64,000 nucleotides of DNA from Rebecca billardiae RCC1528. Its lineage: Eukaryota; Protista; Haptophyta. The notes beneath the pieces are model-generated. The model saw only the letters and a list, made by a program, of their open reading frames with translations. It was not told the origin of the DNA and did not search any database. A program made the position numbers and the translations under genes. Below, in pieces: positions 27,846-54,286 of the stretch. The DNA is taken from the NCBI GenBank assembly GCA_965240325.2, contig OZ251251.1:124001-188000 (forward strand). The letters are read 5' to 3'. The first letter of the stretch is position 1. The number at the start of each line of letters is the position of its first letter.

Positions 27846-29218
27846 TAATACACGCCTTCCCCAACCGACAGTGGGGCTCCACGTTCCATACTACTACAAT
27901 CCTGTCGGCGTGCTGTTGCTAATCGGCGCCCGGTCGGCGAGTTCGGACGACGGCGTTTTGTGGACGACGGTGGGGCGAGGACGACGGGCGCTGGCGCGCA
28001 GCGAGGCGGCCGCAGCCCTCATCCAGGCCTCGCAGGCGGACGGCTGAACGAATTTTCCGGCGGCGCAGCCATCGGCGACGGCTTCATGGGCGGTGACAGT
28101 TGGCGGGCGTCGATCTCGCCTGCCAGTGAGCCTGAGCTGTGTGCGTCTCTTATTCGCGTCTTAGTAAACTGTAGCGATCGATTTGCGTCGGGGCGTTCCG
28201 CGTCAGGCCGGGCTAACGCTGGATGGGTTGGGGCCAACGACGTAGGGGATTCTCGACATCAAACCAGCCCGCTGATGTCTCTCCGCTCCGGCTCGTCGCC
28301 CTTGTGGGTGTGGCGACAGCGCGCGCAACCACTTCAGCATAAGCGGCTCATCGACCAACCGCGCCAGTATATTTGTGCTGATTAGATGATGACGATATGA
28401 GTGCGCGGAGCGGTCATCGTCACTTCGTCAGCCCTGCCTGCCGACTCCACATATGTGGGTGCGGTAAGCAAGCTCGGCGACCCAGTGTACGTGCGGGGCC
28501 GCTTACCCCCGCAGTCAGCCCACAGTTGTACCGCCAGCCAACTCCTCCAGCTGGCGGCGCCCCGCAGCGGCTTGTTTATTGTTGTGCCACTTGGCAATGG
28601 CATGCGCCGCTTGGCTGCCGCAGCATGCACGATGCAGCTGCAGAGCTGCGCTGAGGCGAAGCGCGTGCACCTGCTTCTTACGAACTACAATAAGCTTGCT
28701 GCCGCCGGAGCATAGCAGACGACGATTAGACGGCGACGCGCGCCGCCAAGCTCTCAGGTGCGCGGCTTACGGCTCAGCCAGCAAGTCTGCACACTCCGTG
28801 TCGTAGTGACTTGGCGTCTCGGGACGTGAGTGCCTGCGCGACTGTTGGCGCGGCCGAATTTATTGTAATAATATATTGATATCGGACGCGACGATGACCG
28901 TTCGTCGGACGGCAGCGCGCGGACTGACTGCTACATGATGATGATGACTATATATACGATTCTGATGATGCAGAGAGCGCATAAATACGCGCTCGCCCAC
29001 CGAGCAGCTCATCGCCGAGTCAGAGGACGGAGTCGTCACCTGGAGCAGCCTCGACTGCACGATTGCAGCGCTGTCAGCCGCACAGTGCAGTGGTGCGGGC
29101 CAGTGGCAGCCCGGCCTCGCGTGGGTCCGGTTGGCGCCATTGTTATTGATGCTGATGGCTATTTGGGGCGCTGCGCCGGAGAGTGCCGGGAGTACGACGA
29201 GGCCGCGGGCCGGACCGC

Positions 29219-31494
29219 CACAGTGAACAGATGGACCTCAAAATGTCTACTTTAGAAGCCCCCCTCGAGCGGCCACAAAGGGCAAGATGGCGGATTGCGG
29301 CGGCCCGCCGCCATCCCTCAGTGCCCGCCCATCAGGTGTCCATGACCGACGTCACACTCGATCTCGAGAGAGCAGACCAAGACGGCGAGGCGGGTGACAC
29401 GACCCATTGCATCCCCGAACTCGGTCGAGAAGACGAAGCGGCGCTACAACGCGCGTGGCAGCAAGCTGCGGACGGTGCCCGCGGTGTGCGGCTGTCATGC
29501 CACCTCGCGCGCGCACATGCGCGGCGTCCCGAAAACCTTCGGTCGATGTCTCGCGAAACGGGCCAAATGGGAGGGAGACACATGCGCGCACCCTCCCTTG
29601 AATTTGCAACCGGCATTGACCGGCCAATCTCGCGCGATGTCCCCTGCTGCGCAACCTCTCCGGCGCGCTCGCGCAGAGGTGAGATGGTGCAGTCGCCGCA
29701 ACTCAAGCTGAAGCACCAGCAGGAGGTGCCAAAGGCCGCGGCGGGTGACAGAGCACTGCCGGAGCAGTACCAGGTGCGATACGAGGCCGCGCCGTTCGCT
29801 CGGCAGTGCAGCTCTCTCTTCTCTTTCGTTGCGCGCCGGATCAATCTGAGGGCGGGCGCGTGGTGAGCAGCGCAGCTCGACACTGGCCAGTGCTCGCAGA
29901 GCACCAGATCCCGAGGATGGACAGCGGCGTGGCGGCGAAGCTGATGGCAGCGATCAGCGCCCCACCGGGCTACATCGTACCGCCGGGGTGAGCGTCGGGA
30001 GTGATGCGCTCTCTGATGTGGGCGATCGCGAGCGCGCATTCTGATGTGCGCTCGTGGATGCAGCTCGAGGCGGGGAGGGCCATCAGCTGGTGTGACCCTC
30101 AGCCGTGCCCTGCTGCGACAGGGGCGGGAGCTGATGGAGGATCCTGTCGCCGACGCAGTAAGCGCGCCGTTGAGCACCTCGGCCTGCAGGAGTCCGTGCT
30201 TCGTTCGGCATCATGGCGAGCAGCGCGCGGAATCTGGGCGCGACGAGCAGCGTGATCGGATGCGCGCGTCCGGACGAGCCGATCATGTCTTTGACTGTTT
30301 CAGCCCTCCGCGGGCTCCCGTGCGCTTCGGGCAGGAGCCCTCATCATCAGTCGTCTGATGCCCTGCATGACGCTGCCATACTACTACGACACACGTACGC
30401 GTGAGTCACTGTGAGTCATATCGATGCGATCGTCGCACAGCAGTGGCGCTGCACGGCCGCGGAGCCCAGGGCTGACGATCAGTGTGGACCGAGCCGTCGG
30501 CAGACGCAGAGTGGACACGACGAGGTCGTAGTGCGCGCCGCGCGCGGCCAGGTACCGCCAGGGCCAGGGCCACGCCGGTGACGGCGGGCAGCAGAGGATG
30601 CAGCACGCGCGTGACGCCAACGTGCCGTGCGAGGGCTACGCCAACGCTGCTCAGGCACCGCAGCAGCCGCAGCTCACGCGTGAGGACTTCTGCCGACTGT
30701 GGTTGGCGGCGGTGCGCGAACTCGTCGGCGGCGGCCGACGACCGCCGCGGAGGTGAAGGTGATGGTGCTTGCTGCGCTCAACGCCAGGTGCGCGTATGCG
30801 CGCGAGCTCAATCGGTGGACGAGCACGGTCGCGTGCTACCCGCACGTGGTCGTCACCATCGCCCCTCGCGCCATCGTGCGACTCGGCGGCGCGCTGCACC
30901 GCGCGAGCACACAAGCGTCGGAGCACGACGGCAAGATCATCGGCAACACGTTCCGCGACCGCACGTGCCGGGCGGGCGGGCTGAGCTCAAACAGACGCGG
31001 CACGAGCATGCCGCGAGCTGGCCGCGTCGAGCAGGCCGCCAAGCAGGTGATCGTGGGCAAGATCATGAAGAAGCGCACCAACACCGTCGACAAGAACGGC
31101 CGGCTGCGACTGCTTGCAGCAAAGACGGTGCAGCCGGGCGCATCCAGTGGCAGCGGGCCTGCGCGCGAGGTGCGTCTGCGCGAGATCGTCCATGCGCGTC
31201 GCACCGCATCTCCACCTCCGCCATCTGACGCCTGCGCACCGCATGCGCGCGCGGCCGCCCGGTCGCGCGACGCACTGGCGATTGAGATGACATTCACGCG
31301 CGCGTGTCGCGGGCAGTAACAGACGAAAAGACGAGGTGGCAGGGGCTGGTGAGCGGTGTCTGAAGCATGTATTGGGTGGTTGCGCACCTGCCAGTGCCCG
31401 TCCGCGCCGGCTCAGGGTTCTTACTAGGCCGCCGGCCCGCGTCGCGCCGGCGGCACCCTAAAGTGGACATTTGGCCGCCATTCTGTTCACCGTG
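29219..31494 (+). mobile_element. DNA transposon E1 with RSS-heptamer-like TIRs and decayed RAG1/Transib-like transposase
   Basis: 37-bp TIRs at 29219-29255 (CACAGTG...) and 31458-31494 (rc CACGGTG...), 29/37 identical ungapped; GC dinucleotide on both flanks. Confidence 0.8.
29341..31319 (+). pseudogene. Transposase relic, RAG1/Transib/Chapaev-like DDE
   Basis: Fragments in the expected order, with stops and frameshifts: QVRYEAAPFAR..SLFSF; SDVRSW..WCD..PC; YPHVVVTIAPRAIVRLGGALHRASTQASEHDGK (30837-30935), resembling RAG1 [32 protein letters not shown]. Confidence 0.62.
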
Positions 31495-31516
31495 GCCGAG
31501 TCATATATGCGTAGCA

Positions 31517-31517
<1 letters not shown>

Positions 31518-31600
<83 letters not shown>
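31518..31600. repeat. (TA)n microsatellite
   Basis: Directly visible. Confidence 0.97.
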
Positions 31601-49708: not shown

Positions 49709-52700
49709 CACAGTGCAGGATTGGAATTTTCCGTGACGCTTCGGACGGTCCGCAGCTCGAGTCAGCGAATCCGGTCTCGGCCGGACAGTGGAACTCGGGT
49801 GGAAGCCGCGACTTCGCGGCGGACGGAGCAAAGGAATCAAGGGGGTAGGACGGAAACGAGACTCCCGGACTCCCCCAGCCGCTGGGGGGCCGTGTTTCGA
49901 TCCGGTGCTGAGGTTGGAGCGCCCGGCGTCTCGAAGGCGCCCACCTGGCGCCCCTCCCCGAACCGACCCCCGCCGCCCGGCGGCGTCCTGCTGGGCGCAC
50001 GAGCGCGCGCTGGCCGCTGGCGTGAAGCCGAGGTGGAGCCAACTCGTCCTTCAGCTCGCAGGCGGCCCGGCTCCTGCGACCGACCGCCCTGCGCGCGCAT
50101 CCGCCTGCCTGCTTTGGTGCGGAGGCAAACCCGCACGACCCAGCCCGCCGCCGCCACGCGGCAGCCAGTCGGGGTGTCGTGTCGCGATTTGCGGGTGCGC
50201 ACCCCGCGGGGCAGGTGGCACTGCCCCGCCCGGTCGCTTCCGATCAACGAAATTCCCTCGCAAGCGCCCGCGAACGTGGATCCTCGCCGCGGGCTCGCCA
50301 GGGCCCATGTGCGCGCCCGGGTGCCCCGGTCGAGCCAGTCTGGTGCGAGCACCGAACGATGGTGCGGGCCGGAAGGCGTGGTGCGCGACGTCACCGAGGC
50401 TGCGGGCCAGCTAGGCACCGCTTGCGCGCCTACCAGTAGCCTGTGGGCCGACCACGCGTTCAACCGTGCACCCGATGGCAGTCACGGTGCTCTGCGGCTG
50501 GAGCGCGCTGTGCGCTCAGGCGCGAGCGGCCGCCAAGTTGCCGGGTAGACGCGGTGCGCACGCTATGGCAGCTGCGGATCAGCGTCGCGCGAAGCTCTGC
50601 TGCCCCCACCTGAATGCTCGCAGCACCCACCACACGGCCAGCCGGCCGCGCGCGCCGCGCGGCCACCTCATTCGCGCACAGGATCAGCTTCATTCAGAGG
50701 CGTCACAGCCGGCCGTACAACCGACAACACGTAGCCTTCTAGCGCGCGGTAGATCATCATCGACTTGAGCTTGTTCGTCCGTTCCCTCTCCGGTCTCCCG
50801 GACGTGGTGTGGCTATGAAAAAGAGCTCGAGAGTGCGCAGATGTTACGGCGCTTTCTCGCGCCGTGACTTCGAGTCTCACGTTGAGCACACAGTACAATA
50901 TCCCAAGGCTCGCAGTCGTCGGGTGAGGTGGCCGCGCGGCGCGCGCGGCCGGCTGGCCGTGTGGTGGGTGCTGCGAGCATTCAGGTGGGGGCAGCAGAGC
51001 TTCGCGCGACGCTGATCCGCAGCTGCCATAGCGTGCGCACCGCGTCTACCCGGCAACTTGGCGGCCGCTCGCGCCTGAGCGCACAGCGCGCTCCAGCCGC
51101 AGAGCACCGTGACTGCCATCGGGTGCACGGTTGAACGCGTGGTCGGCCCACAGGCTACTGGTAGGCGCGCAAGCGGTGCCTAGCTGGCCCGCAGCCTCGG
51201 TGACGCCGCGCACCACGCCTTCCGGCCCGCACCATCGTTCGGTGCTCGCACCAGACTGGCTCGACCGGGGCACCCGGGCGCGCACATGGGCCCTGGCGAG
51301 CCCGCGGCGAGGATCCACGTTCGCGGGCGCTTGCGAGGGAATTTCGTTGATCGGAAGCGACCGGGCGGGGCAGTGCCACCTGCCCCGCGGGGTGCGCACC
51401 CGCAAATCGCGACACGACACCCCGACTGGCTGCCGCGTGGCGGCGGCGGGCTGGGTCGTGCGGGTTTGCCTCCGCACCAAAGCAGGCAGGCGGATGCGCG
51501 CGCAGGGCGGTCGGTCGCAGGAGCCGGGCCGCCTGCGAGCTGAAGGACGAGTTGGCTCCACCTCGGCTTCACGCCAGCGGCCAGCTCGCGCTCGTGCGCC
51601 CAGCAGGACGCCGCCGGGCGGCGGGGGTCGGTTCGGGGAGGGGCGCCAGGTGGGCGCCTTCGAGACGCCGGGCGCTCCAACCTCAGCACCGGATCGAAAC
51701 ACGGCCCCCCAGCGGCTGGGGGAGTCCGGGAGTCTCGTTTCCGTCCTACCCCCTTGATTCCTTTGGACGGAGCCTCAAACGAGCGGTGCCTCGGCTCGCG
51801 GCGCGATCTACTCGGCGAAGACCGACGAGGCTGCTCGCGGGCCCGACTATGCGTCGACGCGGGCTGGGGTCGTCTTCCGCGTGGCGCTGGGCAAGTTCCT
51901 CGCCGCCCTGACGGGTGCTCTCCTTTCGCCCTCACGGCGCGCGCGGTGCGTTTCGCGAGCTTCTTGCATGCACCGCCCGCGGTTGCGCCCGAGCCTGATG
52001 CTTCAGTCGACACGGCAGGTGGCTCGCGCAGGGTGGGATTGTGTGCGGGTGCCGCTGGCGGTGCGTCTCACCCTCCTGAAATTGTGTGGGAGGCTGTGAC
52101 ATTGCACGCGTACACCCCGCCACGCCCGCGGCCCGCCCGCGCAAACGCCGCGCCGCGCAGTTGTCTTTGACCTCGAGCGAGCCTGAGGCGTGGAGGCGAC
52201 CGACGGCGGGGTGCGACTTGCCCACCGACCCGAGCCGCATCACCCAGCGCAGCCTCGCCCGCGACGACGCTTCGCCTGGCTGCCACTGCTCAGCCGCGTG
52301 CAAGGCGGGCTGGGCGACGTCTTTGCCCGAGCGCGGCTGCAGCGCAGCACGCGAGAGGCTGGAGCGCCATGACGCGGATGGCGGAGCGGGCTTTGGGCTG
52401 GCTGGCATGAGCCGCCAGGCTGTACCGTCCGCGCAGATCGCGCTCGGCCCGGCCGCAGCCCTCCTGAGCGCGCGCCTCAGAGCTGAGACTGATCACGTGC
52501 ACGCGCACAAGCCACACTGCCGTGGCTGTGTCGAGCAGCTGCGTGTGCTCGAGGCGCGGCGCTCGCACGGGCCACGCGGGCGCAGCGGGTGCGCGTAGCT
52601 GGCGCACGCAGTGCCACGTCCTGCCGCGCCAGTTTGGCGGCCGTCCGCCCCCCCGAGCTCGAGTTCTGCGCGCTTTGCGACGGCGCGGCCGGCCGCGCCC

Positions 52701-54286
52701 ATCTTCATGCTTGGGCACGCCAGCATGGCCGCCGCCGGGCCTGCTGCGCGCGCCGAAGCTGGAGGGCGGAGGAGGGCGCTGGGCTGCTCCTACGGCGTGC
52801 TGCAGCCCGGGCAGGCTTTTCCGCGGCGCGGCGAGGCCGTCGCGCCTGCTCGCCGCCGTCGAGTCGCCCGTGCTGAGTGACCGTCGGCCGCATGTGCTCG
52901 GCGGCACCGCAGGCAGGCGTCCCATACCAGTGTGCTCGAGCCGCTGCGCGCACCCAAGGCGAGCTGCTCGAGCGGGCTAGGTGGGCCCACGGAGTGCGCG
53001 CAGCTGGCGCACGCAGCCCCGCGTCATGGGGTGTCGGTTTGACGGTCGCCAGCCCCCGTGGGCTCGAGCTCTGTGCGCTTCACCACAGAGGTGCCGACGG
53101 CGCCCCGCGGCGCGCAACGGCGTGGCAGCATGGCCGCCGCCGGCGCCGCCGCACATGCCGCCGCTTACGGGCAGTCGAGAGCTTGGGGCAGCACCTACGG
53201 CATGCTGCAGCTCGGGCGGGCTCTGCCAGCCTGCTGTGGCGTGATCGCGCATTTTCCAGACCGTCGACTCGCCCGCGCTGCATATTTGTTTGCTGCGCGT
53301 GCTCGACGGCGCCGCTGCTGCCGCTACGGCCGCGCGTTGCTGCGTCGCGAGCGAGCCCGATGCGAGCTGAACGGCGGCGTGCTCATCGCTGCTGGCGCAG
53401 ATGGGCGCGTCATGGTGGCCACGCACGATGCTGAGTGCTCGCGCGTGCCAGACGAGGCGCGTGCTCGCGCTGTGGCTCAATGTCCGGCAGTGCGCGTGGC
53501 AGGCCGCAGCTGCTCGACAACAGAACCAGCGGGCAGTGATCGGGCTGCGCGCGCGCAGCTGATGGCGGCGAACGAGCGAGCCCGCACCGCCGCGCAAGGG
53601 CTGGGCGACTGGCGCCGAGGTGGCGCGCACGTCGTCCGCTGCCGTTGGCATCGCGGCGGACGCTTCAAGCTCGTTCGGCCGGCGTGTTTTCTCCGACGCC
53701 CACCTGCGAGCGCTGCCGGCACCGTGCTCGGGCGTCAGTATCGGTGGGCTCGAGCACGCGTGGTGAGGCGCTCGGAGCGGTCGACGGCCATGATCGGGCA
53801 GCGCACGGTGGGCGCAGGCCACGCGCACGCCAGCGCCCCGCGTGGCGTGGCTTCACGGGGCGCAGCCACCAGGAGACTGTGCTGCGACGAGCTCGGGCGC
53901 GCTCGGGCGCCGCTGCTCTGCATTTTCCCGAAAAATCGGTTTTCGTGCCCTCGACCGGCGGTATGCCGCCGGGGTGGCCGCAGCTGCGCTCGGAGCAGCG
54001 CGCACGGGCACCGCCGTGTGCGCCCGCCCGCTTTCGCCGCCGCCGAGCTCGAGCACAGCGCTGCGCGGGGCTGCGTAATGCCAGCGGCGCATGATTTTTT
54101 GCCCGCGCCGAGCGCGCGTCGGCGCGCGCAGCGCGCTCAGGTGTGGCCTGCTACCAAGGTCTGTGCCACGATTCGACGCGCCTATGGTGCGCCGAATTTA
54201 GGCGCACCGCTTCAGAATTGTCCGATGATTCGACTAGTGGTGCGGACAACTTAAAACGTCACCCTGAGCAGTTTTCCGGCACTGTG
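49709..54286. mobile_element. Non-autonomous DNA transposon E2 with perfect CACAGTG termini and TA TSD
   Basis: Left TA|CACAGTGCAGGA-N12-GTGACGCTT; right (rc) TA|CACAGTGCCGGA-N12-GTGACGTTT. A paralogous empty site lies at 55742-55793. Confidence 0.8.
49829..51765. mobile_element. Foldback element with 842-bp TIRs, nested in E2
   Basis: Arms 49829-50670 and 50924-51765 (I found two substitutions); 253-bp spacer; direct repeat GACGGAG on both flanks. Confidence 0.92.

Follow-up and report, generated by a model that had tools for sequence, protein, structure and literature searches.

Does a transposon whose ends open with the heptamer of the V(D)J recombination signal sequence (RSS), lying in the genome of the haptophyte Rebecca billardiae RCC1528, belong to the lineage of RAG1 and Transib, as a preliminary description of this DNA had proposed, or to another group of cut-and-paste elements? 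The window analysed here is a stretch of 64,000 nucleotides (contig OZ251251.1, positions 124,001 to 188,000), and positions given without a contig label count from its first letter. We conclude that 29219-31494 is an internally deleted, non-autonomous copy of a cut-and-paste DNA transposon that has recently been mobile. The assignment we favour, with a probability of roughly 0.7, is to the CMCT clade, as a non-autonomous, internally deleted derivative of one of its members and not as a Transib. The CMCT clade comprises EnSpm/CACTA, Mirage, Chapaev, Transib/RAG1, Plavaka, ESTA and Lanisha, and is defined by C(2)C and H(3-4)H motifs, 5'-CA..TG-3' termini and target-site duplications (TSDs) of 2-5 bp (Kojima 2025, PMC12730594). 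The element is organized as follows.

29217-29218, no strand: left copy of the TSD (GC), read from the sequence; 9 of 12 copies have an exact 2-bp TSD.
29219-31494, plus strand: whole non-autonomous element, 2276 bp, with boundaries identical across 11 full-length copies.
29219-29255, plus strand: left terminal inverted repeat (TIR), starting CACAGTGAACAGA, from a repeat search (37 nt, 78% complementary); position 4 is A in every copy.
30643-30740, plus strand: upstream piece of the transposase relic (NAAQAPQQPQLTREDFCRLWLAAVRELVGGG), one frame off from the main piece; its T-x-x-D-F-x-x-x-W is common to the proteins P0003 and P0001.
30738-31100, plus strand: main piece of the relic, with the C-terminal helices, YPH at 30838-30846 and the candidate catalytic Glu in SEHDGK at 30919-30936.
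31458-31494, minus strand: right TIR, its reverse complement starting CACGGTGAACAGAATGGCGG; position 4 is G in every copy.
31495-31496, no strand: right copy of the TSD (GC), read from the sequence.

The element is far beyond chance: 11 occurrences of this 2.27-kb unit share both ends, and its 2-bp duplication carries P = 2.7e-9. Our search for the family covered the window's own assembly (72 Mb in 41 contigs) and gave 36 matches; the 11 full-length copies, whose two ends are exactly identical, are 96.2-99.6% identical to one another, some above 99%, and the nearest relative of the window copy stands at 99.6%. An internal deletion has reduced one additional copy to 1616 bp. At least 14 additional copies hold the right 1.4 kb only and lie inside another element of 2.5 kb, with TIRs TTACCGATTTTGGGCAACTG and TA duplications, which evidently captured one family copy and then amplified. 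We regard the family as young and probably still mobilisable. One run of public reads yielded short interior contigs only, with neither the flanks nor an empty site.

Several neighbours of the family were recorded along the way. The 2.5-kb host (loci L012-L025, for example L013:685-3175, which is G000 C5:2880177-2882667) is itself a non-autonomous element with TIRs of about 45 bp starting TTACCGATTTTGGGCAACTGAAAACATG and TA duplications; its copies, at least 14 in number and 93-99% alike, include as a passenger the right-hand 1.4 kb of the CACGGTG family, with an invariant junction (a slash marks the boundary) reading ...CACCGTG/TGTTTTCGAGCG. A 1.9-kb sister family, represented by L030 (G000 C5:1723753-1725691), has the ends CACAGTGAACAAAAACGGG... 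and ...ATTTTGTTCACCGTG; its relic region is about 93-95% common with that of the window family, and its subterminal sequence is different. The window also holds a second element at 49709-54286, 4578 bp long and unrelated in sequence, with CACAGTG...CACTGTG ends inside a TA duplication (ttTA/CACAGTG ... CACTGTG/TAac) and an internal inverted duplication of about 630 bp (49837-50463 versus 51131-51757). No transposase was detected in this second element, and a weak tblastx match between it and P0003 (E = 0.003) was unconvincing after translation.

The duplicated target is short. An exact 2-bp TSD flanks nine of the 12 copies (GC, TG, TA, CG, TA, AT, TA, TA and TC), against an expectation of 1/16 per copy (binomial P = 2.7e-9), and TA is the commonest target, accounting for four of the nine. 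Among the same 12 copies an exact duplication of 5 bp occurs once, one of 3 bp once and one of 4 bp never. For the window copy the preliminary description had reported 5-bp flanks of ACCGC and GCCGA in which only GC is exact; we find the same limited duplication there, and comparison of boundaries across the collected copies, 11 of them with identical ends, likewise shows no standard 5-bp TSD. The different target-site geometry that it proposed therefore holds in that the stagger is 2 bp rather than 5, and loses its novelty in that TSDs of 2-5 bp are already known for the CMCT clade. GC content in the 20 bp that surround insertions is 40%, versus 63-70% locally and about 70% genome-wide (the window ranges over 62-86%, with the element and its surroundings at about 63-65%), and AT-rich sites are therefore preferred, opposite to the GC-rich target preference of Transib and RAG (PMC1131882). 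At 31517-31600, 22 bp beyond the right end of the element, lies a (TA)n microsatellite about 84 bp long, which is consistent with this AT-rich preference. The alternative that stays nearest to the original proposal is a true early-branching RAG1/Transib-like lineage, whose heptamer would be homologous to that of the RSS and whose stagger would have passed secondarily from 5 to 2 bp; against it stands the missing 5-bp TSD, which is a defining feature of Transib (PMC1131882).

The ends themselves also bear on this alternative. Read from 29219, the left terminus is CACAGTGAACAGATGG, which parses as CACAGTG + AACAGATGGACC + TCAAAATGT; the reverse complement of the right terminus, read from 31494, is CACGGTGAACAGAATGG, which parses as CACGGTG + AACAGAATGGCG + GCCAAATGT. 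As letters, then, the heptamer followed by 12 nt that had been described at each end is correct, as is the count of six out of eight TIR mismatches within positions 14-22 of the window copy (the eight are 4, 14, 15, 17, 19, 20, 22 and 30). The interpretation of these letters as a bipartite RSS, with heptamer, 12-nt spacer and nonamer, fares worse. Among the older copies, left and right ends disagree at just five of the 37 positions (4, 17, 19, 20 and 22), and positions 8-16, the first nine bases of a putative spacer at 8-19, are identical between both ends and conserved among copies too; this conservation of the "spacer" from one end to the other leaves the heptamer/12-spacer/nonamer reading unsupported. 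The variable patch of the TIR spans 6 bp only, positions 17-22, which read ACCTCA versus GCGGCC at the two ends in all copies and, with A on the left and G on the right at position 4, make the arms fixed and asymmetric. The inner block is AAATGTnnACTTTAG and not an A-rich nonamer, and two copies carry insertions of 5-11 bp in this stretch. In related families the second conserved block is placed elsewhere: in a metagenomic relative described below (CACGGTATGCTAAAAATGGCGG), in the 1.9-kb sister family of the same genome (CACAGTGAACAAAAAC...) and in the second element of the window (CACAGTGCAGG...). The 38-bp TIR of Transib consists of a CACAATG-like heptamer, a variable spacer of 23 bp (or 12 bp) and an A-rich nonamer (PMC1131882); the ends studied here have the heptamer-like start, and the left one is exactly CACAGTG in all copies, as an early-branching RAG1/Transib-like lineage would have it, but neither the variable 12- or 23-bp spacer nor the A-rich nonamer follows. 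Most of the likeness to the antibody-gene signal is a trait of the CMCT clade as a whole.

What the element encodes is a remnant. It has no coding function, and its sole coding trace is the frameshifted C-terminal portion, some 150 residues, of a transposase. The long open reading frames in all six frames are a GC artefact without meaning; a Pfam scan of all long ORFs of the element gave nothing relevant, and an Rfam scan gave no RNA family. The peptide YPHVVVTIAPRAIVRLGGALHRASTQASEHDGK, encoded at 30838-30936 and singled out in the preliminary description for its YPH...EH.GK pattern, is nonetheless a real transposase relic. A phmmer search with the ORF at 30699-31319 against 1.84 billion representatives matched five proteins, four of them relevant: P0001 (E = 4e-13), P0002 (E = 1e-11), P0003 (957 aa, matched at residues 830-932; E = 2e-8) and P0004 (E = 7e-4). 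Conservation follows the pattern T-x-x-D-F-x-x-x-W ... L-x-x-W ... Y-x-H ... P-R ... L ... E-H-D-G-K. The two relic pieces stand in one uninterrupted frame in a diverged fragment on contig 16 (C16:1486218-1486593). Among 27 relic copies, variable sites at codon positions 1, 2 and 3 number 12, 12 and 16, many copies are frameshifted and the length of most is not a multiple of three; this spread over codon positions and these lengths lead us to see the relic as free of coding constraint and drifting neutrally. Because the relic represents the last ~150 residues of the enzyme, the two Asp regions are absent rather than "altered", and the earlier picture of a decayed copy with a changed second His and first Asp gives way to that of a young non-autonomous family in which both Asp regions are missing. 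Language-model features of the relic ORF in the ESM Atlas scored 0.75-0.77 and gave no lead. A further relic of the C-terminal domain lies outside the known copies at G000 C33:101108-101320 (E = 4e-13, and 3e-11 with a second profile).

The sole full-length relative that we found is P0003, on a 4-kb contig from a salt-marsh metagenome. The relic domain corresponds to its C-terminus, which lies about 80 bp before the contig end, and the element that bears it has CACGGTA ends. Seven more contigs come from sister samples, and five of these carry a 2.6-kb deletion derivative of the P0003 element (L072), in which the 5' 1.2 kb is joined to the last 0.7 kb; its 34-bp TIRs start CACGGTATGCTAAAAATGGCGG, its flanks differ from contig to contig, and the window element is a derivative of this kind too. 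The element of P0002 (L075), which ends ...GCACTGTG, also has a deletion layout of an upstream ORF plus a C-terminal piece. Read by eye, P0003 proceeds from ITFLYGAD360 over 88 residues to FCIIGD448NP, then through C467-A-W-C470, a helical region with S-I-D...D-V-L-H and a Gly/Arg-rich linker to YPH860 and ALE886HDGK, which gives as candidate residues D360 after a strand, D448, C467 and C470 at +19 and +22 from the second Asp, H860 and E886. By alignment, H-x4-H is complete in P0002 only, the second His being missing from both the window relic and P0003.

An upstream ORF1 is conserved between the relatives (L066:52-846, 264 aa, and L075:218-880, 220 aa; 27% identity, E = 4e-12). In L066, the contig of P0003, it shares the frame of the transposase ORF, with two stop codons between them, and it may be an N-terminal exon split off by an intron or a second gene. 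Neither a kelch nor any other Pfam family matches ORF1 of the relatives, and it does not match the window elements.

The retention of one and the same domain invites another explanation, that this C-terminal domain is not part of a transposase at all, P0003 being an accessory or captured protein mobilised by an unrelated enzyme. The domain is kept in three independent deletion derivatives (the window family, L072 and L075), and neither profile nor structure confirms a catalytic domain; deletion derivatives, however, commonly retain TIR-adjacent sequence simply by proximity. The domain moreover ends a 957-aa ORF that has a D..D..CxxC..H..E layout and is the only large gene of its element, and in the window family it is frameshifted and drifts neutrally. 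We regard this explanation as extremely improbable.

To which named group P0003 belongs is harder to say from conventional searches. P0003 has no Pfam match at E up to 10, PF12940 (RAG1) and PF02992 (Transposase_21) included, and the PDB, searched by sequence (phmmer) and by profile at E up to 10, returned low-complexity or chance matches only; the PDB set presumably includes the chains of RAG1, HzTransib and amphioxus RAGL. Word-index protein searches with P0003 recovered P0003 itself alone and no homologue of its core, and a search of viral contigs found nothing. AlphaFold models reached a pLDDT of 35 for the P0003 core from the single sequence and of 54 for the C-terminal domain with eight alignment rows; the Foldseek matches of the latter model, at that pLDDT, were BAR-domain helices and are meaningless. 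The one search to point to named relatives was the ESM Atlas feature search with P0003:300-700. Its top match is an unnamed cnidarian cluster, and the nearest named matches are several RAG1 clusters at 0.96-0.95 with 177-190 shared features, 0.95 being a score that roughly one shuffled protein in 100 attains, by a calibration that does not extend to protein parts; Transposase_21 clusters follow at 0.92 with about 150 shared features. We take the similarity of the P0003 core to RAG1 clusters, as predicted by the language model, to be a good lead and not a test.

This language-model result is what an early-branching RAG1/Transib-like lineage would predict, and the motif spacings may agree with it. 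Mouse RAG1 has D708/C727/C730 and H937/H942/E962, and its spacings would be equalled by the step from the second Asp to C-x2-C in P0003 (+19/+22) and by H-x4-H-x19-E in P0002. Spacings like those of RAG1 are, however, common to CACTA transposases too. Nor does P0003 show sequence or profile similarity to PF12940 or to PDB chains, unlike Transib and RAG1, which are mutually detectable from sequence (PMC1131882). A RAG2-like kelch-propeller gene beside a RAG1-like gene, the arrangement of RAGL elements, was not seen either: the window element has no second gene, and ORF1 of the relatives is without kelch or other Pfam match. Taken with the ends and the TSD, these points make a true RAG1/Transib-like lineage unlikely. 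What stands of the RAG1-like lineage claimed in the preliminary description is that RAG1 clusters are the nearest named ones in language-model features; a link by profile or sequence search does not.

The same matches can be turned the other way, to an ordinary CMC element of Mirage or EnSpm type in which the RAG1 signal would reflect no more than a common zinc-binding C2/H2 module and RNase-H core. In P0003 the second Asp is followed by a D-x-P reminiscent of the "D-F-P" motif of CACTA transposases, and the Transposase_21 clusters are present among the feature matches. CAC...GTG ends with a 2-bp TSD also lie inside the known CMC range (PMC12730594). The RAG1 clusters, however, rank above those of Transposase_21 and share more features, the termini are CACAG/CACGG and not CACTA, and PF02992 matches neither P0003 nor, in a search without a positive control, the genome. 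We therefore judge an ordinary CMC element very unlikely.

A non-autonomous family that is probably still mobilisable calls for a source of transposase. A TIR pattern with up to two mismatches retrieved the known copies and scattered single ends, with no pair 3-15 kb apart, and the P0003 core, run against the genome as a protein and as a two-row profile, gave no candidates; neither of these searches, both without a positive control, found an autonomous partner or the intact copies that the preliminary description suggested looking for. Profiles PF02992 and PF12940 had no match in the genome, again in searches without a positive control. Two fragments considered as a partner, at C16:1486218 and C14:1495907, are pieces of 380-580 bp only. 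Two ORFs of 1320 and 1321 aa (C16:661745-662071 and C17:10123-10449) matched one C-terminal profile (A3) at E = 0.03 and 0.27, and both matches were gone with another (A5).

Placement within the CMCT clade, as a derivative other than Transib, accommodates these results best. The lost transposase would belong to a rare family with one full-length known member, P0003, which reads as a DDE enzyme, and its order D, D, C(2)C, H, E would correspond to the motif pattern of the clade. A transposase acting in trans would move the copies: it would bind their outermost ~16 bp as well as the AAATGT block, cut at the CAC termini and integrate them with an offset of 2 bp. The family would form a separate lineage within CMCT, an orphan by sequence, and we see in it a new family within an already recognised clade. 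CA..TG termini are found in all copies (CACAGTG...CACCGTG), in L072 (CACGGTA...TACCGTG) and in L075 (...GCACTGTG), and the 2-bp TSD of the window family lies within the 2-5 bp of the clade; a candidate DDE layout, with C-x2-C after the second Asp and a His motif before the Glu, can be read in P0003 and P0002. The window family nevertheless departs from the described members in having no detectable sequence or profile similarity to them, in that most members lack the second His, and in its host, a GC-rich alga-like protist and not an animal, plant or fungus.

Comparison with the individual groups sharpens this placement. The window family resembles Transib and RAG1 in its heptamer-like CACAGTG/CACGGTG ends, in a TIR of 37 bp versus 38 bp (PMC1131882) and in that language-model features put RAG1 clusters closest, among named ones, to the P0003 core, yet every Transib feature that we tested, namely the 5-bp TSD, the spacer/nonamer TIR and sequence similarity, was absent; its targets are AT-rich rather than GC-rich, and its transposases would be about 960-1280 aa long versus about 700 aa in Transib. 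The Mirage element of C. elegans and EnSpm/CACTA likewise have CAC-type ends, and Mirage has 2-bp TSDs (Repbase). EnSpm/CACTA elements differ in their CACTA termini, where those here are CACAG or CACGG, in a TSD of 3 bp rather than 2, and in Transposase_21, which had no match here (in the genome, by a search without a positive control). ESTA, an EnSpm-like group of rust fungi with TA TSDs, has an HHpred match to RAG1 (PMC12730594). Compared by description, ESTA is similar in its 2-bp duplication, TA being the commonest one here, and in a transposase tied to RAG1 by remote methods only; it differs in that TSDs here are also GC, TG, CG, AT and TC, in its TET/JBP gene, which has no counterpart here, and in its host. 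From the one language-model result, the lineage may lie nearer to the RAG1/Transib side of the clade than to the CACTA side.

The window copy is itself a dead passenger, and its value lies in marking a transposase lineage that is invisible to Pfam, PDB and word-index searches, and that is known from only a handful of marine metagenome contigs among 1.8 billion protein representatives. That P0003-type transposases are a deep algal sister lineage of Transib and RAG1, with a CACAGTG heptamer and a 2-bp stagger, seems to us doubtful; if true, it would place RAG-type end recognition well before animals and would make the target stagger a property that can evolve within a lineage. A lineage beside RAG1 and Transib would, if real, likewise widen the known host range and target-site behaviour of the group that gave rise to the V(D)J recombinase.
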